NCBI GenBank assembly: GCA_037447605.1
Contig: CM074808.1
Coordinates: 3,286,001-3,350,000 of the forward strand
Length of the DNA: 64,000 nt
Direction of reading: 5' to 3'
Origin: Zygnema circumcarinatum SAG 698-1b
Lineage: Eukaryota > Plantae > Zygnematophyceae
Below, one piece after another: positions 4,585-34,100 of the stretch. The first letter of the stretch is position 1; every line of letters starts with the position of its first letter. The notes below the pieces were generated by a model. That model ran no database searches. It was not told the DNA's origin and saw nothing but the letters and a program-made list of their open reading frames with translations. A program made the translations under genes and the position numbers.

Positions 4585-6723
4585 ATGGCTGCGACTGAGG
4601 AGGTCAAAAGAGGGGCGGAACTAGCGAGAGAAGGCAAGGTTTTATTGGAACGATCAGACTGCACCTACACGCATTGCTACTGGTAATGTCACTTAAAAAA
4701 GTAAAACTGGCTCGTACTTTTGGAAAGTCCTGTATTGGATGACAATGTTAGCTTCTTGAATGAGGCATCAGATGCAGCTGAGAGTTGGAGTGTTCAGTGC
4801 ACTATGACTGGAAGCTGCATCGTCACAGTAACGTAAAACAAGTAACTTTCATCTCAAGAGGTTGAACTTTCACCAATTGTGCTTGTCAACGGACATCGGA
4901 TACCCCGTGGTTCCGCGTATTGGACGCAATGCTTAGGTCATTTAATTAGTGCTTTTATCAATATTCTGCGTGCTTTATACTAAACAAGATATTTTATTCC
5001 CGAGCTTGAGTTATTTTGGGGTCTGGAACAGTGAGGAGAATGTCTACATGCTCTGCAAACAGCTAATGAAGTGTGGTGTGGCTCGATCAGACGCTTCAGA
5101 TTTGTTGGTTGTTTTTATTTCCAATCCGTCTCGTAAGGTAATTTTTTATACCGATTGAAAACTGGATATTTGGGTAGGAGTAGCTAGCAGTTACTCAGAA
5201 CTCCTTATCCGCAATTGTTTTTGTTGTCATCTTCAAAGTTGTACCCTTAATCATCCTCCGCTCCACAGGCAGGATGAATGTGATGTCTGCTTTTGAAGGC
5301 AATGGTTATTTGAAAGGCGAAACGTAACAAAACCTGTGGCAGCATGGAGGGACTTGCGACTGATTGACTGATAACATCGACTTCATGGTTGTTGGCAAAC
5401 CATCGATTCGCAAGTAAGTTAAGAACTTAAGAGACTGAAAGGCTGACCTTACTGTGCAGATACCCTTGTGGAAACAGCGAGGGGCCCCGCCAAACGAGTG
5501 TGTCGTTTGGGACTATCATGTGATCTGTATTCAGGTGAGTTCCTCTACAGAGGCAATTTACGCATACCTCAAAAAGAACTAGGAATGGGTTTTGAGCAAC
5601 ACATCCAAGGAGGTGGCCGAGTCTTCGCTGCGGGCAGCTTCAATGGCTGTTGACAGCAATTGACACGCAGCAATCTCTAGTGATCGCGAGGCATTGCTGA
5701 AATGATCTTTGCAACTTGTGTATTCTTGGGACTACTTTGTCCTTAGCTGCTCCTGAGTTTCAAAAGACCATTTTTGTACACATTTTCTTTGTAAAACTGT
5801 TACCCGTCTGTCACAAGCTGATGCCAGGATTTGATCACAGGTCGGATCAATAGGAGAGGATCGTGTTCGAGTTTGGGATCTCGACACTGTACTTCCATTC
5901 CCCGTGCTTTTCCAGCGTTATGTGCAAGAGGCCTTTTGGGGTGGTGTCCCACATCAGCTGCTGCTGGGTGATGAATACCAACGGTATGGCGCTTGGTTCT
6001 GTACCCCAAGTCCATTCTTCCTAATGAATATCCCCATGTGCTTTTCGACCTCTAGATTCTGCATCAATATTCGATATATGTAATCGTGAAGAATTGGAAA
6101 TTAATTATGAGTACTTTATTGTGGCTTTGCAGGTTGTACCGAGTAGTGAATGTGGATCAGTTCCTACGATTCTTTGCTTCTAACCGCTCACACATGCTGA
6201 GCCCAGGGAATGCAAATTGGTTGCAACCTCCCCCTGCCTATGCTTGCATTACCGCTGAAGGTAAGTTAAAAGATGCACAAAAGCCCTTTCGCTCTGCTGT
6301 GACAATCCACAAGAAAAAAAACAGCTTGATTGCATATTAAAAATAATTTAAAAGATTTGATTGGATAAGCGAAGCTTCGCCTTCTAGGAGCAGCCTTGAG
6401 GCCTGAAATTTCTCTCACCTAAAGTATTATTATCCTGCTTCAACTGTGTCTTCTCCCTTGTCCTTCCCCATTCCATAATAAGCAACATAAAATCCCTTCT
6501 CTTCTCTTCCTCTTCTAGTGCGTTTGAACTGTCCGCTTCCTTCCTAGATACAAAATTAGGGCTTGGTGCAGACGGCGACGTCAACAATCTGGAGGAGTAC
6601 GTGCGGATGTCTCCAGCCATGGTGGAGGAGGTGCCTGAGGAGAAGAGCCTGTTGGAGGCTGTCGAAGGGAGGATGAGAGGGCTGCTATTAGATGAGCAGG
6701 GCTTGCTGAACAAGCTGCTGTGA
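4585..6723 (+). CDS. NTAQ1: Protein N-terminal glutamine amidohydrolase (Arg/N-degron pathway), 233 aa
   Basis: Exons 4585-4682, 5032-5137, 5460-5534, 5841-5983, 6133-6260, 6572-6723 (702 nt, GT-AG). Motifs YC|EENVY, VVFISN, IPLWKQ, VVWDYHVICIQ, VWDLDTVLPFP, FASNRSHM and WLQPPPAY. The Cys-His-Asp triad is intact. Confidence 0.95.
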
Positions 6724-16731: not shown

Positions 16732-19700
16732 CTAGTCTCTGCCATTAGAAAGCAGGGGTGCCCGTCCATTTTCATGCTGCTCCTCGGTATACACTAAAGA
16801 AACCTGCAGGGCAGAGGAAGACAAACCATGGTCACAAAATAAGTGAATATGACTGGGGATAAAGTTTTGCTCTGTTGCAGGAGTGGGGATGCGACAGGAG
16901 ACAACGGATCGGACAAGGAGGGGTTTTGGGTGTGGGTCTCCCCCACTATATGTAAACTTAGCTTCCGGCCCCTTAAAAACTCGCAAGTCGTACAAAGTGA
17001 CCATATACGAAGTCAAATCAGGGAACCCTTAAAGCAACTTGAGTATGCAAGCCATCCAGAAATTAAACTCCACCCGTTCTTCCTATCTAGAGTGATGACA
17101 ATGACGTCCTTTGAAGTAAATCTTTGTTACTGCTATACTTGCGGTCCAAATCTTGAAAAGAAACGTTTTTTCTGTTCACTCATGTGAGACCCTATAACAA
17201 ATTTGGCTTCAGACATCATTACCAAATTGAACTCTTTCAGGTTGGAACACCTTCCTCTCAGGCTTACTGCATACAATATCTCTCTCTCTCTCTGCAATAT
17301 TCAGAGACCAATCCAATAAATGTTTATTTTTTCGTGCAGGGAACAACCCAATCCTCCTTTCCACAGGGTAGCAAGTGCCCCACACCCTCTTTCTTTCTTC
17401 CTCTATCCCCTTCTCAATTTCCAGTCATTGGAATCAGTTTCTTGCAGTCAAGACCAACTATCACCTACTTCAGTTTCAGCTTTCTGAACTACAGAGTCTA
17501 CAATTCATCTTTCTTTACAATCGCACTGTCAAATACAGCACCACCTTTTTTCGTGAAGGGCTCAAGCTGGAAAAGCAAAAGAAACAACAAACAGGTAGGA
17601 AACGCACCTGTGACCCATCCCTCGTCAACATCATGTGCTCAGGTGGTGGTAGACCGTGGGGGCTGCCCTTCGGTAAAGCACCAGCACTTTTCATCCTCTT
17701 CCGTGCCTCCAAATACTTTTCATAAGCATACCATCCGATTCCACCAGAGTTTACCGCCAGCCCCACAAGATTGGTAACGCTCATCTGCAACTCCGCAGGA
17801 ATCTATCATCAATAACTTGTGTTCCTACTTTCAGTGAAGAAATGAGTGAGCAAGTAGAACAGCTCCCAATCAAGAAGTAGTCGAACACAGTTTCAAGCTT
17901 CTAGTCGCGGTTGAAATTAGAGAGCGTTGGCTGATATTTTATCACCATAATTCCCACCCTTCCACCATAGGAAGCCACAATACTTTAAAACGCAAGCTCA
18001 TTCAGACACCCTTGCCCTGAATGCAGTGTTCTACATGTTCAGAAAGCGGCTAGCTGAAAGTCATCCACGAACCGCTATATTTACGTTGACCCAAGCTTCT
18101 TCCCTATTTCAAATGCTATTATGTGACGTTTTTAATTCATCAAAATTTGACAGGGACAAGCTTGGAGGCCACCACTTACTCGCACGTCGCCAAATGCAAA
18201 GAGACCACCAAACCCTTGCAAAATGGATTTAGTCCGGCCTGCAAAAAACGACGGAACAGTAAAGAACCATTAAGTGCGGAGGATGTGGGAATTGAGGCAT
18301 CGTAAATGACCATACACTGAACCATCACTTGCAAAAAAAAAAAACCTGAAAATGAATGACATGGGATCATTGTTGCTTCCTTGCTTTCAAGCTGACTTCC
18401 AGAGAAACGATTCTTCTTTCAATAAAAGGCATACTGCGATCCGCAAAAAGGACGTGAACAGAGCAAAAACCTGACTTACCAACGATTGAAGTTGTCAGAG
18501 AATCATTGACGAGTGTACAGAGGTAGGTAGCCAGATTGAGCACAAACGCTGACGCGCACGAGGTAATGAAATAAAACATAAACATGGGGTCGCGTATGTG
18601 GGGGAAATCAACGAGCGCCGTAGCCTCGCCATTGAGAAGCACAAAGAGGAAGGAGAATGGTAGAGACCAGCAATTGTTATAGAGTAGCAGCGTGAAGGAA
18701 TCAAGCTGTAATTCATCCCCTAGCTTTCCTACTATCACCACATATGCAGCTGTTGCCACAGCGGAGGACAGCGCTAGGATGTATCCGGCTAAATCAAAAG
18801 TAAGGTCTCCCAAGCCGGCAATAAGGCCCCCAAAAGTGGTCATGTACACCGATAGCTGAACTCGGGTGGATGCCCTTTTGTCCCGCATTATGTAGTCGAG
18901 GAAAAGCACAGAGGGTGTTGTAGCACTCTTCAACACCCCATACATGGGAATGTTGACCCGGTTCAATGCTGACATGTCTAAGACGAGTTTTAAAAGGAAG
19001 GCGAAAGATAGCAAAAAAACCTGTCAATGCAGCCATCAGGGTTTCAAAATGAATTAGAAATTTCATAAACGTAACTTCTGACATTCAGTATCACCTAGCT
19101 GCTCACCAATGAAACAAAGGCCATATTCAGAAGTTTTTTATTGTGCAGCCAAACTCCTAAGCCCTCGGCCAATCCAGGATCAAGTGCAGGTCCTATAACG
19201 CTCGAAGCAAAACAAAAAACGATCCGTACTAGAGACCACACCTACATCCTCCAAACGGCTTCCAGCAGCTGGCATTATTCAAACCAAGCAGCGAATTGCG
19301 CTTTGACAAGGGGAATCAGACCTAGCAGCCCAGGCACACGAGGTACACAGCAAAAAATGTACGACTGCACCAATGCGCACTTGACTATCGTCAGCTAAGA
19401 TTTACATCGTGGGCAGAATTACAGAAAGATCAATTGCAACATTAACAAATTAGATCAGGTCCTCCAGTGCAGAATTTGTAAAAGAAATTCGCAGTTTCCT
19501 GCAAGTCTATTTTTATCTCAATACGGAAAGAGTGAGAGAGTGTAGAGGAGGGAGAGACCAGAAGAAAGGAGAGACAGACGGAAGGAGATGGAGGAAGGAT
19601 GATCTTCTGCGCCGCTGTCCCTGCTCAACTGCAGGAATTCTAGGCGATTTGACGCATCTAGTTTTTTTGCAAGTAGATAAGAATTGCTCACCCGTTTGAA

Positions 19701-20195
19701 GACGTAAAACTGAAAATTGCCCAAACGAATCAGTCCCACATTGCGCATCAAAATGAGCAATACAAGAGTGAATATTGTTTGGCCCAAAACTAGAGTATAC
19801 GGATAATTAAACTTGTAAACATGGAAAATTGCCTTGTTAATGAACACACTTGCTACGGACATCCCCCCTGCAATTGCACAGAAGAGCGGAGGAACAGCAG
19901 TTAGTTAGAACAGTGCTCGATTCAACAACCACTACGTAGACGCAACTGTTTGATCTTCTCAGTAATCTAGTTGATATTTGACAGCAGGATCTGTTGAGTG
20001 AAGGATCAAAAGACAAGGTCAATGCCTATGCGAGCTGTACAGTCTATGAGCAGGCAATAAACACGCATATAGTTCTTTCGTGCAAATCGGCACGATCTTG
20101 GCTCAGCGACAGCTGACTGACACACAGCCATCAGTCATCACGCAGATTTCCTTACCATAGAACAAAGCAGTCAAGATGCCCTTATACGAACTCAT
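16732..20195 (-). CDS. Nucleotide-sugar transporter, SLC35D / UTr7-like, 354 aa
   Basis: Exons 20195-20156, 19867-19692, 19020-18480, 18238-18180, 17784-17608, 16803-16732 (1065 nt). Motifs SVFINKA, VNIPMYGVLK, GDLTFDLAGY, LCTLVNDSLTTSIVG and NLVGLAVNSGGIGWYAYEKY, with about 10 hydrophobic segments. Confidence 0.9.
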
Positions 20196-24357: not shown

Positions 24358-24799
24358 GGCTGCTGCGAAGTGTTGGTCGCCCGAGAGGCCGCTTGAGGAG
24401 GCGGCGGCGTGCGCTCTCCCGGAGAGGCTGCGGCTCGCGGAGGCGGAAGAGGACGCGCTCGGGGCGAGGGGGACCCTATAACTCTGGCCGGCCCGGGCTT
24501 TCACATGTGGCCCAAATTTGTTCCGTTCAGATTTCGTAGCATATAACACAGAAATATATGTCGAAATTGCGTTTGAAATTGTAACAGGAACAGAAACCTT
24601 ACGCTGCATCGTACACGTGAAGTGCATGTTCACAAGTACAGCCGAAATAGGCAAGAGTACATAGAACTGCTAGAATTTGTGAAACGCTTAACAGAACTGT
24701 GAAAACAGCGACATGGAACCTTGGAACAGGACTTTCTTACCCTCTCCTGCCAGCTTCCCCCGCTCTTCCCGAAGGCGAGGTCCAGGGGAAGGGGTGGCC

Positions 24800-27694
24800 A
24801 TGGCGGAGGCGGAGGGCGCGAGCAAGGAGCCGCGAGTGGTGGCTCTGATCATCAAGAATCCATCAGCCGTTACAGTGGGGGATTTCCGCATGGAGATGCC
24901 GGTGGAGGCGACCGTGCTGGCTGTGAAGCAGCGGTTGCAGCGCGATTACACTGGACATCCGGAGCTTGCACGGCAGAAGCTCATTGTGGGAGGACAGATA
25001 ATTAAGGATGGAGCACCGATCCGAGAAGTTTTTAAGCTGGTGTGATCTCTCGCTCCGTCTCACTCTGTCGCTCTTTCTCCATCTCCTCTCGCTCTTCCAC
25101 CCTCCCTCCCTCTCTCTCCCGCACTCTGTCTACAGCACACACTTTCTACATTTTAATGAATTTAAATTTACATTTTCTCTTCACTTGTTCTTCATCTCCC
25201 TTGTCCGCCCCCTCTTCCGTCTGCCTGTTCTTAGAAGCACCTTCTCACTTGAACCTGAGGGCTTTGCGGATGCGCTCTGGCAGAATAACTTGGCGGAACC
25301 TCAGGTGATGCATCTCGTAGTTGCAAAGCCTCCGTCAGAGAGCGCTCCTTCCTTAAACAGCTCAATTCCCTCCCAGGCAACCCTAGCCTCTCTCCCTTCG
25401 TCTGCAACGCCCGCCGCATCGCCTTCGACCGCCTCTTCTTCTGGTGCAAATGCGCCCATTCAAAGACGGATAGCCCCCTTCTCTGGTGCAGTTGATGCGT
25501 CTGCAGGTAGTGACACTTCGTCAAGTGCAGGAAGGGCTCCCTTCGTTTTCACTGCTGGGACTGATTCGGGATCCAACCGCCGGCAAGGAGTTCCAGCTGC
25601 GGGTCCGTCTCTGTATGGAAACCCTCCATCTTCATCCGCTTATTCTCCTGCCGGAGAACCAATGGGTCAAAGTAATTCTACAAGTATAGGAGGAGCTGGC
25701 CCATCATCCTCGGCAAGTCCGGCCACGGATGGCAATGTAGCAGCAGCAGGAGCGGCAGCAGCCTCTGGAGGAAGCCCAATGCAGCCAGGAATTGATGCCA
25801 CAGCATTTCCTGCTGGGCCGCTACCTCCGGAAACTGTCAACCTGGCAATGCTTCAGGTGCGAATTTTATGGTTCTTATGCTAATTTTTGCCACATATTAG
25901 TCTTTCGGTTTGATCTGAGATGCATCAACTGCCATGTATCAACATGTGCTTATGCAAGTTGTTACGATTTGCTGTCGGGGATTTGGCAGATGATGTATGG
26001 GGGAATGATGCTACACCCGTGGGCGTACAGCCCCGCAATGGCTGCATATAATGCAGCATTGCTGAATCCTGCAGCTTTTGGAGGGCTCGGCCCGCACTAT
26101 CCAGGGTTCATGCCGCCCATGTGTCCCCCAGGAACGTTCCCCGCTTACATGCCACTACCCGGAGACCAACAGCAACGACAACAGCCAGGTGGCGTCTTTG
26201 CGATGGCTCCCCTTCAGGGAGGTGCCATGGGAGCTGCCGGATTTGGCGCTATGCCCTTCAATATGCCCTTGTAGGTGGCCGTTTTTCTGGCACGTTTTCT
26301 CAGTCCAGTTATCATCTCCATCATTTCATACGGCCTTTCAGAGCTACCTCCATTGGAACAGAAGTGTTTTTGGCCAAGCAACGCTTTTATGAGTTAATTG
26401 GAGTAAAGAGTGCGGGACTGTGCAGGGATAGACCAGCAAGAGCCTGGATGCACAGTCGCTGATTGTTTTTCTTCGTTTTGTTTGTTGAGGTTTTTGGCAG
26501 AGGGGGTCCACTGCAGGCAATGCCTCCAGGGATGGCTGGTGGAGGTCCCATGGGCCCTCCACTTGCAATGAGAGTTGGAGCAGGCGGAGCACAACCACCA
26601 GGACCGGGCGGTCTCCGGCAAAGGCAAGGGCCTGCAGTTGGAGCAGCAATTGCAGTTCAAGGTGGTGGAGGGGGGCCTCAAGCAGTGTTCGTTCAGCATG
26701 TTGGCCGGGAGGGAAGGCCGTTTGCTCGGCGAATTCGCATCCAGTTGCGACTTGACCTCATGCTGATCGCCAAACTGGCAGTTCTTGTATTCGCATTCAA
26801 TCAGGGTGGCGCCTTCCATAGATTTCTGCTCCTTTCTACCGCTGCTGTTCTCTTCTACTTGTGAGTGTCAACCAAAGTTTTCTCACATCTCAGAAAAGCC
26901 AGATGTCAAGCAAAACGGTGGAAATTTTTCTAAATTGTCATGGAAGGTTGTGCTGCCAACAGCTTGACATAGTCATTGCTGCCGTAGTCATTGGCAAGCA
27001 ACCCTAAATAGAGGGTGAACTTAAAAACGCAGCCACGAGCACAGGCTGGACAATTCTGGATTATATTAGCACCCCTCCAGGTAGAACATGGTGGTTTCTT
27101 GGGCTCTGGCTTAGAACTCAAGATGCCTGTCGAAAAGAAATAGCTGAAGTTCCCAATGGCGGAGAGATGCAGGTATCAAACAGGAGCGTTGGCCCCATTA
27201 GTACGCTGGTTTTCTCGGGGCACACGACAGATGCTGGGACGGCCGCTGCATCCTCCTGCACCACCTGAGCCAATGAACCCTGGTCAAGGTACGTCTATGT
27301 CGATCTGCGTCCCAATCGCACATGTTTGTGCAGAGCAGAAATCCGAAGGAGAACGGTGAAATTGATCAGATTGTGTGCACTTTTGTTTATGAGGATGTGA
27401 GTGTGGCTTGACGTTGCCTCAGACTGGATTTGGGGCTTGTGAGCAGAAAATCGGGAGGGGGCAGAGGGAGGAGCTGGACCTGCCTTGGATGGTGTTGCAG
27501 CAGCAGCAGCAGAGCAGCAACCTCGAGCTCAACAGAGGGACCGGTGGGGCGTTCTGCGTGAACTTCAAGTTTTTATAATGGGATTTGTGGTGTCTCTCCT
27601 CCCGGGCTTCAATCCTCCTGACGAGCCTCTCTTCCGAGAGGCAGAGGGCGGCCCACAAGCTCCTGCAAATGCCAATCTGCCCCACCAGGATTGA
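24800..27694 (+). CDS. ER membrane protein with an N-terminal ubiquitin-like domain and an EBS7-like C-terminal membrane region (HERP/Usa1-like architecture), 605 aa
   Basis: Exons 24800-25039, 25284-25856, 25990-26270, 26501-26860, 27173-27288, 27447-27694 (1818 nt). UBL: LIIKNP...ATVLAVKQRL...QKLIVGGQIIKD...VMHLV. C-terminus: LDLMLIAKLAVLVFAFNQGG, FYLYQTGALAPLVRW, WGVLRELQVFIMGFVVSLLPGF. An alternative in-frame ATG lies at 24713. Confidence 0.85.
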
Positions 27695-28759
27695 GAACGT
27701 GTACCAGCCATAAAGAACGAGACAGAAAATTTGGCAATATTATTGATGGAAAGGGGCGGGCTTTCGAGACTGGAGGCTCTCTTTGAGTTTTTTCCAATGT
27801 TCACTTTGTATGGGGCAGGTTAGCGCTCAATAATGTATGGGATGCTCCTGCACAAGCTCCATGTGTTGGCTCAGTTGTTGGGCTTTCTAGAGTTTATGTA
27901 CTATTATGATCTATGCTTCCAGAGGAGAATTGCACAACATCATGTGCTGATTCTATGTGATCACAGTGAGCCGTTTCTTTTTTTTTGGAAGGACCAGCAA
28001 TTTAGGGATCCAAGTGGACAAGTTCCATGCTTCAGTATTTGTTGAGGCTTTGGGAAAGTTTTCTCACCCTGTCGGAGATATCTAATTTGCAAAAGGTTTT
28101 TCCAGAACAGTACCGTATGGGATTTGATGGTGTATGCAATCAACATTTACAGCCAGGAAAAAAGGTTTTTCCAACCACATAGCTTATCTGAAAATAGCCT
28201 GGATTCTGGATTTCTTTTTATAGGTGGAGGCGTCATACATGTGAATCTTGAAACCAGTGAATTCATACGAATTAGCACGGCATGCCTCTGTATTTAAAAA
28301 GCTTGACACAAAGATTGGAACAGGCTTCTCTACTACTGTGCCATCCGCCTGCCAAATATGAATGTGCTGTAATTTCTAGGATTTCCAGTTGCTGTCATTC
28401 CAGGAGCTGTCTAACAACAAGGGCTTGCCTCTAATACATTTGTCTAAGAAAAATGAGAAAAATGAAAAAAATTGGTCGACTGAAAGTGAAAGACTACTCT
28501 AAACGAACATCCCTGTTTTCACCATCCCTGTGACCAACCAAGTCCCATATGGGGATACAAGTGGAGTTGAGATTGATCTGGATTCTTGCGTTCAGATCAC
28601 CAGCACGTCGTTTAAGTGTTTAGGGTTGCCATAGAAAGGCTTTGGGTGAAAACCAGTCAACCAGTCTTCTCCGATTCGTTGCTGGAAGCCATTTCCTGTC
28701 CAAGAAGCCGCGGGATCCTTGGTAGTCCCAATGCGATAAGACGAGCCAGAAGAAGACTC

Positions 28760-30218
28760 TCAAGTCATATAAAGCTCGGGTCTAAGCACGCCCACGTAGC
28801 TCAAACTGCGATACTTCTCCGCAAAGTCAAGGCCATAGCCCACCACGAATTGGTCCGGACACTGCACCCAAATTCCAGCTTTCACAGTGTGTTCTCTCCT
28901 TTGACCACCGTGCATGCAAAAGTGCTTAGGACTTTGGTGCAAAAAGGAAGGAGAAAGTAGACAAATAATTCAGTAAAAGGATACCTATAAGAGCTAGGAA
29001 TGGCATATTCCTTGTAATTATAAGCGCACAAAGGCTTCTACCTTATCATGCTTCTACCTTGTCTTGTTTCGAGAGTCCACTGTATCATTCATTGCTGAAG
29101 AAATATATGCTTAGTGAAGTAAGATGTTATGAACATAAGGCTAAAGCTCAAAGATTAGGCAGAAATTGAAAGGAAATGAATGCCGGGTCAGCTGGAAAGG
29201 AGGGGAGGTCGAAAAAAGAGGGAGGGAGAGTGTGTGTGAGGGAGAGAATTCAAAAAGTTAAATTGAACCAGATGCAGTGGAAGGATACCAGTTCAGATTT
29301 TTGGTAAAGTGAATTCTGACCTGAAAGCCGGTGTAGAGCTTCCCACCATCTGAAAGGGTGACGGGAATAACACGACGTTCGGGTTTATCGAGCAGCACGC
29401 ACACCGACACAGATGCAGCTTTCTTAGCCTCCAAGTGCTTCACAAGCGCAGAAAGTGTCCGTCCGGTATCCAAGATATCCTCCACCTGTAGATTCCCCCC
29501 ACCTTCTCTTAGCGAACACGTTCACATTCCGAACCTTATTCAAGAAGGGAGAAAGTAGTTTTTTTCTTCGATCACGCTGTGATTTCTCTTTCGGCAAAAA
29601 CCCTTGGATCGATGACAGCCGCTTACCACAATAACATGCATCCCCTCTACGTTGATCTTGAGATCTCCCGAAAGCTGGACATTGCCGGAGCTCTCAGTTC
29701 CGTGGCCGTACGAGACAGCACGGATGAAATCCACCTCCAGCGGTATACTTATAGCTCGGACTAGGTCCGCCAAAAACATGAAAGCTCCCGTTGCAACCTA
29801 CACCGTTCAAAACCAAACTGACCTTCAGAGTTTAAAGAGGCAAAAGCAGTAAATGGGACTTTAAGGTTTCTAAATTTAGGGTTTCCGAGTTCCTTAAACT
29901 TGCCATTCCACTTTCCTGTCTCTCCAGAGACTACCATCCACATGCCTGCCGTCTAGTAGTATAAACACAGCACAGAGACCCCTTTCTCTTGCTTACCCCT
30001 AAAAAAGGGGTAAGCAATAAAAAGGGTCTTCCAGCAATCCAACAGTCTAAATTCTAATCCCCTTTCTTACTTACACCCAGCACTGCCACCTTCCGCCCCA
30101 CAAAGTCACGTGAGATCTCTTCACCGAGCTCCGCCACTTTTTCGTGGATCGCGGAAGCGGAGAACAGCACTGTGGCAATGTCTGCATCTTCTGCATGGAA
30201 TCCAAAATCCGGCGCCAT
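28760..30218 (-). CDS. HPRT: Hypoxanthine(-guanine) phosphoribosyltransferase, 193 aa; possible N-terminal extension from ATG 30467
   Basis: Exons 30218-30075, 29797-29627, 29485-29321, 28861-28760 (582 nt). PRPP loop [17 protein letters not shown] flexible loop, and [16 protein letters not shown]. Confidence 0.95.
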
Positions 30219-31192
30219 TTTACAGCTGCTCTTCAAAGTAGCCGCCGTTGAAGGGGGGGCATACTGCCTGCGAGTTGGGCCAGATGGGGCGTGGGAGAGA
30301 GAGGGGGAGAGGGAGAGGGCTGAGGGGAGTGAGGAAGTGGCAGTCGCGGGGAGTCCACGCTGTCGTTGCTCAGTGCGATTACGCCGCTGGCTATATGCTC
30401 TGACGACACTGTTGAACTGAGGCTCTCTGTAAAGGACGCTGATGGGGTGCTGCCCAACTGCCGCCATGTGCTCAGAGATGCATCAAATGAACGACCCAAT
30501 GAAGACGAGAAGAGCTTCTCAAACGCCGGCCTCCCACTTTTCATGTGATCTTTGCTTCCCAGCGGACGCCCGAGATTCGTCTTTTGAAATGAGGAAGAGT
30601 TTATCTTGTGTACATCGTTTAATTCAAGGACGTGTCTCCCCACGAATCGGTGCTTTTGTTCTGAAAGGGGGACCTAAATTGCTTCTACTGTGCTGCATTT
30701 GAAAAAAATGGGACTTCGCAATTTTGATTTGATTACCCACGATATGGACTTACGGAAACGGTCCATGAATGGACGCTTTGGCTACAAACTAAAATAGCGC
30801 ATTTTGGAGACCTGTAAGCCTATTTCTGCCTTATTTCTGGACCAAGCCTTGCCTGCCTTCAGTTTAGAACCCCTCCGAACTACCAAATTTCTGAACAAAT
30901 CTACCCAACTACTAAATCTACACACATTCTCTCCAAGCGGCTAAGCACGCGAGACCTGATTACACCCAAGTTAGCTTCACGCAAGTGGCCAATTTATCTT
31001 GTCCAATCTCTACCATAAGAACCATACATAAGAACTCTCCCCTGAACCCTAAAGCTTGAACCCGCACTCTAATCTTACACTCTGACCGAGCAACGGCTCC
31101 ATACTCTCTCGAGTCCAGTTTCGTCCTGTCTTCTTTTAACTTTCATCTCTTATCTTCCCAAACCCTGAAATTCTAATCTCATATATGGCACT

Positions 31193-34100
31193 CTAGGCAG
31201 CCGCCATTGCTCCTTTGAAGCTTTGAAGGTTCTCCGGCTTCACCAGCCACCCCTCAAAAGGAGAAGTCGGCCCGAGCAGCACTGCACGAGCCTCGGCGTA
31301 AGAGAGGGCAGCCCTCTGCAAGCAGAAACCATGGTTCATTCCATCAAGGACTCGTCCATGGCTGCCATGCAGAAGGAGGTTTACAGAGGAAAGTCCGGGT
31401 TCTCCTGGCCAATTGCAAGGCAGCAAAGTAGGGGCAAAGCGGCTACTTGCCTTAGCGCTGCTGTAGGAGAGAGTCGCCATCTCCGGCAGTCCATCCCATA
31501 GAGAACAAAGTGCTTGAAAGCGGTCGAAAACAGCAGCCCTGTACCCTCGACACTCTGTTATGTGGCATGGTGAGCTCATGTAGACAATGACTATGCATGT
31601 GCTTTTATGCATCCATACAAGTTACACTAAATGTCTTCCGTCGAACACCATGAAACCCAAGAAACCACCCCCTCCCGCTACCCCACCTCTACCTGCATAG
31701 AGCCGATCGTGTAGCTGCAGAGAGAGCTCCCTTTCGGGACGTTCCCTGACGGCGGCCCGTCGTTCCCAAAAGCACTTCATGGCGGCCGCTTGCATCCCAA
31801 CTGACTGAAAAGCTGCGGGAGAAAAGGTCCCATATACAGAAAGAAAAGGTCCTTATGTGAGGCTAGACAGGGAGCATGACTGCCATCAGCTTTACCATTT
31901 ATATGTCAGCCATGAATGTAGTTTTTTCTATGGTTTTCGCACCCGCATGCTATCGTTTCTGCAGGTACTGCGGGGCGAGATATTTCGTCCAAGGAAGGGC
32001 CTCCTCTCCAGAAGTTTGGCTGCAAACCAGAAAATCAGAAAACCAGAAAACGTAATGGCTGTGAATATACGTTATAAAGAAGAATGCTAAGATCCCCGAG
32101 AAATCTTCAAACTCTGAAAGGGACAGGGGCATTCAAACGAAAGCCAACCTCATTCAGGCGAAATGGTGGATGAAGGTGCCCACGGAGGCTCAAAAGTCGC
32201 CCAAAAGTTCCTCGATGCAGAGCAATAATTTGTGGGTGCTTAACTTCTATCAAGTCCTCCCTCTTCAAGGAAGCAAAACTCCTTTCAGTTGGGAATGAGG
32301 GAGGCCTATCTTTGAATATGGGATCTAAAGCCACGGTGATGGAAGAGAGATAGATTGGCTCTGCAAGAAAGTGGCTCAGAAGTGCTCCTGCACTGCCCAT
32401 CAGCCCATGGAGATGCTCACAATTTGCCACTCCCCCCTTTTCCCTGCGATCCGATTTGGCCCCTCCTCACGGTTCAGGCAGTTTCTGAACTTGCCTTCAG
32501 TTCAACAGGTAAAGAAGTTTTTTTTCTGGAAGTCCTGCATATCCATATCCTTTCTGTACTGAAGCATTCATCCCTAAATCCCACCATCTCACCCTGCAAT
32601 CCGAGCACGTTCCAACGTGCAATCTTGTCGCTGCAAGACATGCTCAGAGTGGGGTCCCCTCTCCCAGGCTTTCTGCGAAGCACTCCTTCTGCCTGCAGAC
32701 CCTCCTCCTCCTCCTCCTCCTCCTCCTCCTTTGTGGCCCCTCCTCCTGCCCTCCTCCTCAGTTCAGACCTTGGAGCCATGGCCGCCATGGCCGCCATTGC
32801 AGTCGCATGTTCGCTAGCACTACTGCGCTCCCCTGCTCGAGAATCTTCTCTCTTTGAGTCTATGTGATGTCTGGCAAGCTTTGCTCCGGTGCGCTTGCTG
32901 AGAGGTTTAGGGTTTCTAAGGTGTTTCTCAGTGGTTTCCTGATTTGTGAGTTCTGCATGGTGCGACGAGAGTCCAACAGAAGGGGAATTGCTAGTGCTCA
33001 TCTGCAAGAGAAAACAGCCCTCCCCCAGATTGCTTTTTCAGCAGCCGGAGTAAGGAAAACGTAGCAAACAACAACGAATCAGAAACGGAGTATTGACCGC
33101 ACCTCACCTGCCCTAGCAGGGTCAACTATCTCTTCTGCATTCTCCCACTGATCAACGCGGTAAATCGCCGCATCGCCACCTGCCATGTTCAACATCTGTT
33201 ATCACCAATCCAGCTTCCTGCAAAAGCAAGCATCCATTCACTTTTTCTCTCTCTATTTCTGTCTGTCTGTACACTCACTCTCTCTCCCTCTCGTCATTCT
33301 CCATATCTTGCTCTTTTTGTCTCTAGTAACTCTCTGTCTCAGTGCTTTAGCCTCCTCCTAGGCACATGTGAGCTGCACTTACAAGGAGGCTGACTGCAGT
33401 AGAGATGCAGTTGGACTCCCTGACGGAGGCGGCACGTGCGGAGCGGCTGCCCTACTGGCTGCGCCCATTCGAGAATGGAGGCAGCATCAGGCGGGAGATC
33501 GCCTCTTGCCATCTGCTCCAACTGGCTATAGAGCCACCTGGGAATCCAAACGAATCTACTGCAGTATGTGTCAGCGTTTGGAAAGTGACACGAAAATTAG
33601 AACATGGTTTCTCTACTCCTGTACCAGCCGGTGATAGTTGCGTGCTTTATGCGTTTGTCTTGTTTCGTGGGAAGAATATGCTAGAGAACAATGGCCAGCT
33701 CTCCGCTTTCTCAAAGTTTCGGGATGATATCTTCTTTGATCAGCATGCATCCTAGAATTTTTCTAGGAAGAAGTCATCAAATGTATGGAGCCCCTCCACT
33801 GTAATCATTTTGGAGTTAATCGAAACACTGCAGCCTAAGACTTTTCATCATAAGGGACTAGGAAGAAGTGGGCAAGGAACTGCGACTCCTAATCCTCTTT
33901 TCAGAAACAAGACATTAGCAAAAAATTGGAATACATGATTGAACGATTCTTTGAAGGTATTGTGTTTCTGTTCGTGGTTTGGTTTGGCTTGGCTTAGTTT
34001 GGTGAATGAAACGGTCAAATCATTCTGACATAATTCATGAACTAATTTGTGCATCTGCAGAGTGACTCTTGATTGTTAACATTTGCAAACTAAAAGTTAG

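Follow-up and report, generated by a model that had tools for sequence, protein, structure and literature searches.

Does EBS7, a partner of the Hrd1 ubiquitin ligase in plants, share its origin with animal HERP and yeast Usa1? In Arabidopsis, EBS7 binds and stabilises Hrd1a and is needed for Hrd1 stability (PMC6677890, PMC12940902), and HERP is also a partner of the Hrd1 ligase (PMC2764048, PMC12940902). EBS7 has been called "plant-specific" or "green life-specific", and Usa1/HERP are said to be missing from plants (PMC6677890, PMC12940902, PMC13328587, bioRxiv 10.64898/2026.01.25.701614). Plants and Chlamydomonas are described as having no Usa1/HERP homologue in papers up to 2026, and no paper connecting EBS7 with HERP was found in our literature search. 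The question is raised by a gene of the alga Zygnema circumcarinatum SAG 698-1b, located on the plus strand at positions 24800-27694 of the window, that is, the whole stretch of 64,000 nucleotides analysed here (assembly GCA_037447605.1, contig CM074808.1, positions 3,286,001 to 3,350,000). Its product of 605 amino acids (aa) joins an N-terminal ubiquitin-like domain (UBL), a long linker and a C-terminal membrane domain, and an earlier note made from the sequence alone had proposed that EBS7 may be a HERP orthologue that lost its UBL in land plants and that this gene keeps the ancestral architecture. Our findings suggest that the gene is probably an orthologue of plant EBS7 that carries a UBL of the HERP/HERPUD subtype, and that a HERP-family origin of EBS7 is likely.

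A HERP-type domain on an EBS7-type body

The N-terminus of the protein is very probably a HERP-type UBL. The ubiquitin-like fold claimed in the earlier note was recovered in an AlphaFold2 model of the orthologue built from a four-row alignment, which shows a beta-grasp with the order beta-beta-alpha-beta-beta-3/10-beta (predicted local distance difference test, pLDDT, 77), and Pfam ubiquitin matched exon 1 with an E-value of 8.4e-5, below the gathering score of the family. When this domain was compared with the PDB using Foldseek, a check proposed along with the claim, the UBL of HERP (1wgd) ranked first and that of HERPUD2 (2kdb) second among at least 500 ubiquitin-fold matches, and these two also had the highest identities among the Foldseek matches (25-28%). 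Against the single-domain chains of the PDB, a four-row UBL profile scored 32.2 bits with HERPUD2, 28.3 bits with HERPUD1 and 23.0 bits with RAD23A. With an eight-row profile, which extends the four-row one by UBL exons from two more species, HERPUD1 reached 45.1 bits (E 9e-11) and HERPUD2 39.8 bits, followed by RAD23 as the next family (26.7 bits) and mono-ubiquitin (about 24 bits); polyubiquitin chains were excluded from the ranking, since their scores sum over repeats of about 12 bits each. The HERP subtype is supported because the HERP margin widens as the profile diversifies, as expected of true subfamily members. The profile ranking, obtained from the sequences, agrees with that of Foldseek and is independent of the structure model.

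The aligned land-plant family described below is almost certainly EBS7, with the 605-aa protein as one of its members. A 60-aa piece of the hairpin, a short query, was searched against 1.8 billion representative proteins and gave six matches, all of the green lineage, including P0001 (615 aa, with identical architecture) and P0005 (383 aa, from a lycophyte); the piece is 80% identical to P0001 and shares 45-56% identity with the remaining family members found. The search with the C-terminal region of P0005 retrieved 181 proteins that span liverworts, mosses, lycophytes, ferns, gymnosperms and angiosperms, and none of the 120 listed among these matches carries a Pfam domain. The angiosperm members are about 290 aa long and bear the database name "Transmembrane protein", presumably also the database name of At4g29960, the Arabidopsis EBS7 gene. 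No Arabidopsis sequence occurs among the 120 listed of the 181 matches, and neither the name EBS7 nor the sequence of At4g29960 was found in the cluster members or in paper supplements.

The algal protein is collinear with this land-plant family of about 290 aa from approximately residue 305 to its C-terminus. In alignments of 23 and 80 sequences, the invariant or nearly invariant features are a basic juxtamembrane motif preceding [LI]D[LF][LM]L..KL, the FNQ.G loop together with YLYQTG..P..RW, and a C-terminal helix ending in GF..SLLPGF. In the full-length alignment, collinearity reaches the cytosolic pre-hairpin region, GG[IV][FY]A[VM]P ... [IM]P[LF].[FY]N.P. The hairpin motif begins at residue ~141-145 in angiosperm members, and the N-terminal soluble part of Arabidopsis EBS7 comprises 142 aa (EBS7-N142), which bind the cytosolic domain of Hrd1a and PAWH1/2 (PMC6677890). 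Since the position of the hairpin fits this published fragment, we take the land-plant family as EBS7. Judged by alignment, the pre-membrane region of exon 3 appears to correspond to EBS7-N142, and the second half of the EBS7-N142 region aligns. The likeness of the C-terminal segments to EBS7, pointed out in the earlier note, could be traced in the hairpin, the tail and the pre-membrane motifs, the label EBS7 being the deduction given above.

Distribution of the fusion

The same fusion was found at other loci. P0001 is an intronless 615-aa open reading frame (ORF) of a related species, present on mRNA contigs of four runs, with 59.5% identity overall, and the Chara braunii protein GBG91601.1 (CBR_g52634, 740 aa) is a complete fusion with 46% global identity. 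The locus L001, from the NCBI assembly GCA_948144035.1 (guanine plus cytosine content of 64%), contains NLSEPQVMHLVV and the hairpin besides the UBL exon, and its tail ends in PHQD. A 73-kb metagenome contig (L003) carries the same fusion, and a short metagenome contig (L002) has the fusion in part, namely the last UBL strand and the linker together with the hairpin and the YQTG-type exon; the rest of the UBL and the tail are missing. The exon order is conserved in Chara, L001 and L003, the last UBL strand NNLAEPQVMHLVVA is conserved in these three as well as in L002 and P0001, and an alga-specific tail end (PHQD/PHQE/PHHD) is common to P0001, Chara, L001 and L003.

As to the annotation and state of these loci, CBR_g52634 has two deposited models (P0007 and P0197), of 653 aa without the tail helix and 740 aa with it, both annotated only as "Ubiquitin-like domain-containing protein". 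In L001, the UBL exon reads RQS*SSAGQ at 6128-6160, where relatives read RQKLIVGGQ, and the frame can be restored by a -1/+1 indel pair 17 nucleotides apart; this break stems from an error in the assembly or else marks an incipient decay of the UBL. P0003, the gene model deposited for this locus, omits the UBL region and is truncated.

In land plants, a Pfam scan of seven members, from lycophyte to angiosperm, revealed no UBL, and the 13 loci recovered in a metagenome scan with the C-domain alignment were all of land-plant type and UBL-less. In metatranscriptomes, stop codons upstream close the ORFs of the moss, liverwort-like, conifer and angiosperm types, none of which carries a UBL. When three algal UBLs were searched with tblastn against the gene and 10 kb upstream in Marchantia and Physcomitrium, no match was obtained, and the same search recovered the UBL in the algal loci with E-values from 1e-14 to 1e-18. 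Pfam, upstream stops and tblastn of the two bryophyte loci all agree, then, with the earlier statement that land-plant EBS7 has no UBL.

In a maximum-likelihood tree of the C-domain, one branch (96/96 support) divides 20 UBL-less land-plant sequences from five UBL-bearing ones; the tree is unrooted, its Chara row does not include the hairpin, and the branch of L001 is very long. Because a single branch splits bearers from non-bearers, one gain or one loss suffices for the UBL character. The survey of phylogeny and UBL presence proposed for this locus was thus borne out in the division between UBL-bearing charophyte-type algae and UBL-less land plants and gave no direction of change, since in an unrooted tree a single gain fits equally well as a single loss.

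Common ancestry or independent fusion

We consider a common ancestry of EBS7 and HERP likely. With somewhat less confidence, we favour the fuller reading in which EBS7 is the plant orthologue of HERP/Usa1, the ancestral UBL-hairpin scaffold of Hrd1 is intact in charophyte algae, and the UBL and its tether were deleted once at the origin of land plants. From the orthology with HERP first suggested for this gene, the HERP-type UBL, the EBS7-like body and the one-change tree stand; homology of the membrane domains is putative.

Several points weigh against a HERP-family origin. The homology between the membrane domains of EBS7 and HERP/Usa1 is one that we infer. The EBS7 C-domain profile had no match among PDB sequences at E <= 10 and hence gave no Usa1 signal; the PDB should, we assume, hold the Usa1 chains of the yeast Hrd1 complex. 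Fold searches with the AlphaFold2 model of the C-domain (pLDDT 64) returned only plant EBS7 clusters in the ESM Atlas, at a TM-score of about 0.3, and nothing in the PDB, and an ESM Atlas search limited to named clusters was blank. The Pfam ubiquitin matches of the N-terminal domain amount to 16-23 bits, under the gathering score of 25.4, and the inclusion of At4g29960 itself in the family is deduced from length, name and hairpin position. Finally, two human HERPUD1 segments of presumed sequence, a hairpin and a tail (60 and 29 aa), scored just 4.5 and 0.2 bits, respectively, against the EBS7 hidden Markov model, which is very low in absolute terms.

These presumed segments are suggestive but a lead only. 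They align collinearly with the corresponding positions of the EBS7 profile, at S.R plus the second helix plus YL[HY].G, and at F..SLLP. The score of the presumed hairpin was reached by none of 2000 composition shuffles and by 15 of 2000 block-preserving shuffles, and that of the presumed tail by 19 of 2000 composition shuffles. Among the listed PDB matches of the UBL profile there was no full-length HERP chain. A homologue search with full-length P0001 found only Chara, its candidate list being swamped by low-complexity words of the linker, and residues 431-615 of P0001 matched only P0001 itself. The C-domain model just mentioned has a predicted TM-score of 0.33 and helices at 19-42, 49-68, 72-86 and 132-155 of its 186 residues.

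In an ESM Atlas search with residues 425-615 of P0001, the nearest cluster was the plant family. The second-nearest cluster is unnamed, of 116 aa and from Chordata, with a score of 0.87 and 187 of 256 features shared; it could consist of C-terminal fragments of HERPUD.

The main competitor of common ancestry is an independent fusion, in which EBS7 is a green-plant membrane protein unrelated to HERP, exon shuffling added a HERP-like UBL exon to it in an ancestor of these algae, land plants never had the UBL or lost it, and the likeness to HERP is convergence. The gene structure lends itself to such an event, for the UBL is encoded by a separate 5' exon and 14 further residues from exon 2, and a long low-complexity linker separates it from the EBS7-like part; the homology of the EBS7 membrane domain to HERP is, moreover, unproven, and the unrooted tree accommodates a single gain as well as a single loss. 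The capture would, however, have to involve exactly the HERP subtype of UBL and to hit a protein that already had the domain order, the hairpin anchor and the Hrd1 partnership of HERP. It would also presuppose that these algae had a donor HERP gene, and such a gene is not known from any green plant (PMC6677890, PMC7838096, PMC13328587). The presumed HERPUD1 motifs, too, align collinearly with EBS7. We regard an independent fusion as unlikely.

A second alternative is that the protein is a member of a different family of UBL proteins with a membrane anchor (Dsc3/TMUB of Dsc/gp78-type ligases, or the plant MUBs) and serves a ligase other than Hrd1. Pfam Dsc3_N matches exon 1 weakly (E 0.15, 13 bits) and an Arabidopsis MUB structure appears at Foldseek rank 11, but neither Dsc3_C nor any other C-terminal family was matched by Pfam in six exon pieces and 10 full-length proteins, the HERP UBLs score above every other UBL of the PDB (HERPUD1 leads by about 18 bits), and the C-terminal two thirds are clearly of EBS7, whose Hrd1 partnership is experimental. 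A relationship to these families is very improbable. With Dsc3_N at E 0.15 and no Dsc3_C, an identity as Dsc3/TMUB was rejected.

Gene structure and expression

The gene, its exons and its expression are confirmed. The joined coding sequence of 1818 nucleotides encodes 605 aa with no internal stop, and all five introns begin with GT and end with AG, as claimed when the six-exon ORF was first noticed. Public transcript contigs from four runs of three studies were aligned to positions 24600-27950. In these contigs all five predicted introns are skipped, with exact borders, GT..AG ends and depths of 75-560; contigs that keep introns have depths of 10-40. One contig has exons 1-2-3 spliced together and another exons 2-3-4, the joints between exons 4 and 5 and between exons 5 and 6 are present in the four runs, and so is the junction 25039|25284 that links exon 1 to exon 2. 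The overlapping spliced contigs cover the five junctions, so that the splicing of exon 1 to the membrane exons, for which RNA-seq had been recommended, is observed. Among ORFs of at least 110 aa that resemble real exons, the closest are all encoded on the minus strand, at 18367-19862 (some 5 kb upstream) and 30054-30643 (some 2.4 kb downstream), with a few mechanical ORFs in between. Because these neighbours are distant and on the opposite strand, the UBL exon is not part of a neighbouring gene, and the spliced contigs likewise contradict its assignment to a separate gene. That the UBL exon and the membrane exons are two adjacent genes or a read-through transcript, for which just the long linker and the sub-threshold Pfam score speak, is hardly credible, given that high-depth spliced contigs from three studies connect exons 1-2-3 and 2-3-4, that P0001 is an uninterrupted 615-aa ORF with the same architecture on mRNA contigs of a related species, and that Chara, L001 and L003 keep the identical exon order.

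The peptide strings quoted in the earlier note (VMHLV, WAYSPAMAAYNAA, LDLMLIAKLAVLVFAFNQ, RFLLLSTAAVLFYLYQTGALAP and ELQVFIMGFVVSLLPG) were all found, RFLLLSTAAVLFYLYQTGALAP straddling the exon 4/5 junction. Hydropathy peaks at aa 445-469, 473-491 and 557-577 agree with the three hydrophobic C-terminal segments described there; segments 1 and 2 are only about 4-6 residues apart, and the AlphaFold2 model has two helices at this place. The coordinates of the gene and of its parts are given in Table 1.

Table 1. Features of the UBL-EBS7 gene in the window, with the encoded parts of the protein
Feature	Coordinates	Strand	Description
Exons 1-6	24800-25039, 25284-25856, 25990-26270, 26501-26860, 27173-27288, 27447-27694	+	Joined ORF
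5' untranslated region	24775..24799	+	Approximate transcript start; contigs begin at 24791
Exon 1	24800..25039	+	aa 1-80: UBL strands 1-3, helix and short 3-10 helix, according to Pfam and the AlphaFold2 model
Exon 2 start	25284..25325	+	aa 81-94: final UBL beta-strand NNLAEPQVMHLVVA; aligns to model strand E87-93
Exon 2 remainder	25326..25856	+	aa 95-271: Ser/Ala/Pro/Gly-rich disordered linker
Exon 3 start	25990..26085	+	Met/Tyr/Ala-rich segment MMYGGMMLHPWAYSPAMAAYNAALLNPAAFGG, conserved in P0001, Chara and L002
Exon 3 remainder	26086..26270	+	First half of the cytosolic pre-membrane region, GGVFAMAP ... MPFNMPL
Exon 4 first part	26501..26726	+	Gly/Pro-rich stretch up to the basic juxtamembrane motif
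Exon 4 end	26727..26860	+	RRIRIQLRLDL, hydrophobic segment 1, short NQGG loop, most of hydrophobic segment 2
Exon 5	27173..27288	+	End of hydrophobic segment 2 with LYQTGALAPLVRW motif, then amphipathic helix
Exon 6	27447..27694	+	Acidic/Ala-rich spacer, C-terminal helix WGVLRELQVFIMGFVVSLLPGF (27545-27610), PHQD-ending tail, stop codon
3' untranslated region	27695..27950	+	Transcript contigs; extends further by ~0.9 kb according to contig size

The linker is composed of S, A, P and G to 65% (S36 A34 P24 G20 in the 175 aa of residues 96-270), has no Pfam match and is missing from the land-plant homologues in the full-length alignment. The GGVFAMAP ... MPFNMPL region aligns over its full length with eight land-plant members. 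At the end of exon 4 the columns R, D, L, K, Q, R, A and Y are invariant in the alignment of 23 sequences, Y-L-Y-Q-T-G..P...W of exon 5 is nearly invariant in those of 23 and 80 sequences, and in the C-terminal helix (aa 557-578) the columns E, G, F, S, L, P, G and F are nearly invariant in 80 sequences.

At the 5' end, a loose contig end at 24775 carries an Illumina adapter, and upstream of 24712 three runs have no coverage and the fourth a depth of 2.2. Since coverage begins at about 24775-24791, the ATG at 24800, which the start of the P0001 orthologue matches, is the likely start codon. An in-frame ATG at 24713 would give 29 more residues and is probably unused because transcripts start downstream of it. 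At the 3' end, two transcript contigs cross 27950 with 914 additional bases.

Low-depth contigs of runs X3 and X6 connect 25116, in the CT-rich intron 1, to 27637 via 27 foreign letters, and loose ends occur at 25121 and 27514 in the four runs, that at 27514 running into AGAGAG... These joins and loose ends are probably assembly chimeras at CT/GA-rich low-complexity sequence and not alternative splicing. By eye, the minus-strand neighbours resemble a nucleotide-sugar transporter (18367-19862), a hypoxanthine phosphoribosyltransferase (30054-30643) and, further downstream, a tRNA adenosine deaminase (32474-33007), and they have no bearing on the UBL-EBS7 gene.

Proposed function and significance

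The membrane topology, the binding to Hrd1, the role of the UBL and the membrane-domain homology to HERP that enter the following proposal are what we infer for this protein. The hydrophobic segments 1 and 2 would form a hairpin of two closely spaced helices that anchors the protein in the membrane of the endoplasmic reticulum (ER), with both ends in the cytosol, as their hydropathy suggests. The third hydrophobic or amphipathic helix, near the C-terminus, would lie at or in the membrane. By analogy with EBS7-N142, the cytosolic region before the hairpin would bind the cytosolic domain of Hrd1 and PAWH. Because this region matches the Hrd1-binding EBS7-N142, we propose a scaffold role, and the algal protein is probably a scaffold and stability regulator of the Hrd1 ubiquitin ligase of ER-associated degradation (ERAD), like HERP and Usa1. 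Hrd1 association, both physical and functional, and ER-stress induction are on record for Arabidopsis EBS7 (PMC6677890, PMC12940902) and for HERP and Usa1 (PMC2764048). The UBL, on a flexible tether of about 175 aa, would add a HERP-like function, either contact with the proteasome or shuttle factors or control of the turnover of the protein itself or of Hrd1. EBS7 would then be a HERP-family scaffold and not a plant invention, with the UBL and tether lost once on the land-plant stem.

As a natural protein in which a HERP-type UBL and an EBS7 body would be united, this gene product offers the missing intermediate between EBS7 and HERP, and two questions, the identity of the plant Hrd1-Derlin scaffold and the origin of EBS7, become one testable hypothesis. 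If it is true, the reported lack of Usa1/HERP in plants and the supposed plant specificity of EBS7 concern one gene, and the EBS7 hairpin is predicted to bridge Hrd1 and Derlin, as Usa1 does. It would also follow that in land plants another partner took over from the UBL, with PAWH1/2 as speculative candidates, that knowledge of HERP and of Usa1 from cryo-electron microscopy is transferable to plant ERAD, and that the UBL loss dates to the origin of land plants. The impact on annotation is small and the value mainly conceptual, for the evolution of ERAD and for plant proteostasis. What is new here is an architectural variant of a known family, and it makes a reassignment of EBS7 to the HERP family likely. 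The Chara protein is already public, and no link of it to EBS7 or HERP was found in the literature search.

Comparison with known systems

Land-plant EBS7 and the algal protein share the cytosolic pre-membrane region (GG[IV][FY]A[VM]P ... [IM]P[LF].[FY]N.P), the hairpin (RR[FI].[VI]..[QR][LI]D[LF][LM]L..KL...F.FNQ.G...R and YLYQTGAL.P..RW) and the C-terminal helix (W.G..[KR]E.Q....GF..SLLPGF). The land-plant proteins have about 290 aa in angiosperms and 335-460 aa in lycophytes, ferns and bryophytes. Beyond them, the algal protein has about 300 N-terminal residues, comprising the HERP-type UBL, the S/A/P/G tether and the Met/Tyr/Ala-rich segment, and a C-terminal extension of 25 aa ending in PHQD. 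The UBL and tether set the algal proteins apart as an architectural variant of plant EBS7.

With HERPUD1 and HERPUD2 the algal protein shares an N-terminal UBL that appears to be of the same subtype (25-28% identity) and the order UBL, long low-complexity cytosolic region, two adjacent hydrophobic segments and short C-terminal tail; it differs in being about 200 aa longer than HERP. The presumed HERP motifs, S.RF/L-TM2-YL[HY][HQ].G and F..SLLP, look similar, whereas the EBS7-type FNQDGS and LYQTGAL are not known to be conserved as such in HERP. HERP is a protein of rapid turnover whose UBL is required for some substrates, and HERP and Usa1 share just the UBL motif (PMC2764048).

Usa1 is also a UBL-containing ER membrane scaffold with two transmembrane segments that binds Hrd1 through the cytosolic part before them. 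It differs in its internal UBL and its 838 aa, and no sequence similarity was detected with the EBS7 profile against the PDB. In Usa1, Hrd1 is bound by the cytosolic part N-terminal to the two short transmembrane segments, and ERAD-L does not need the UBL (PMC2764048); UBL-less EBS7 parallels this situation, and because the UBL of Usa1 is dispensable, its loss from a scaffold of this kind is plausible. The Chara braunii orthologue, in turn, has the same full architecture and the same motifs as the Zygnema protein, with a longer linker.

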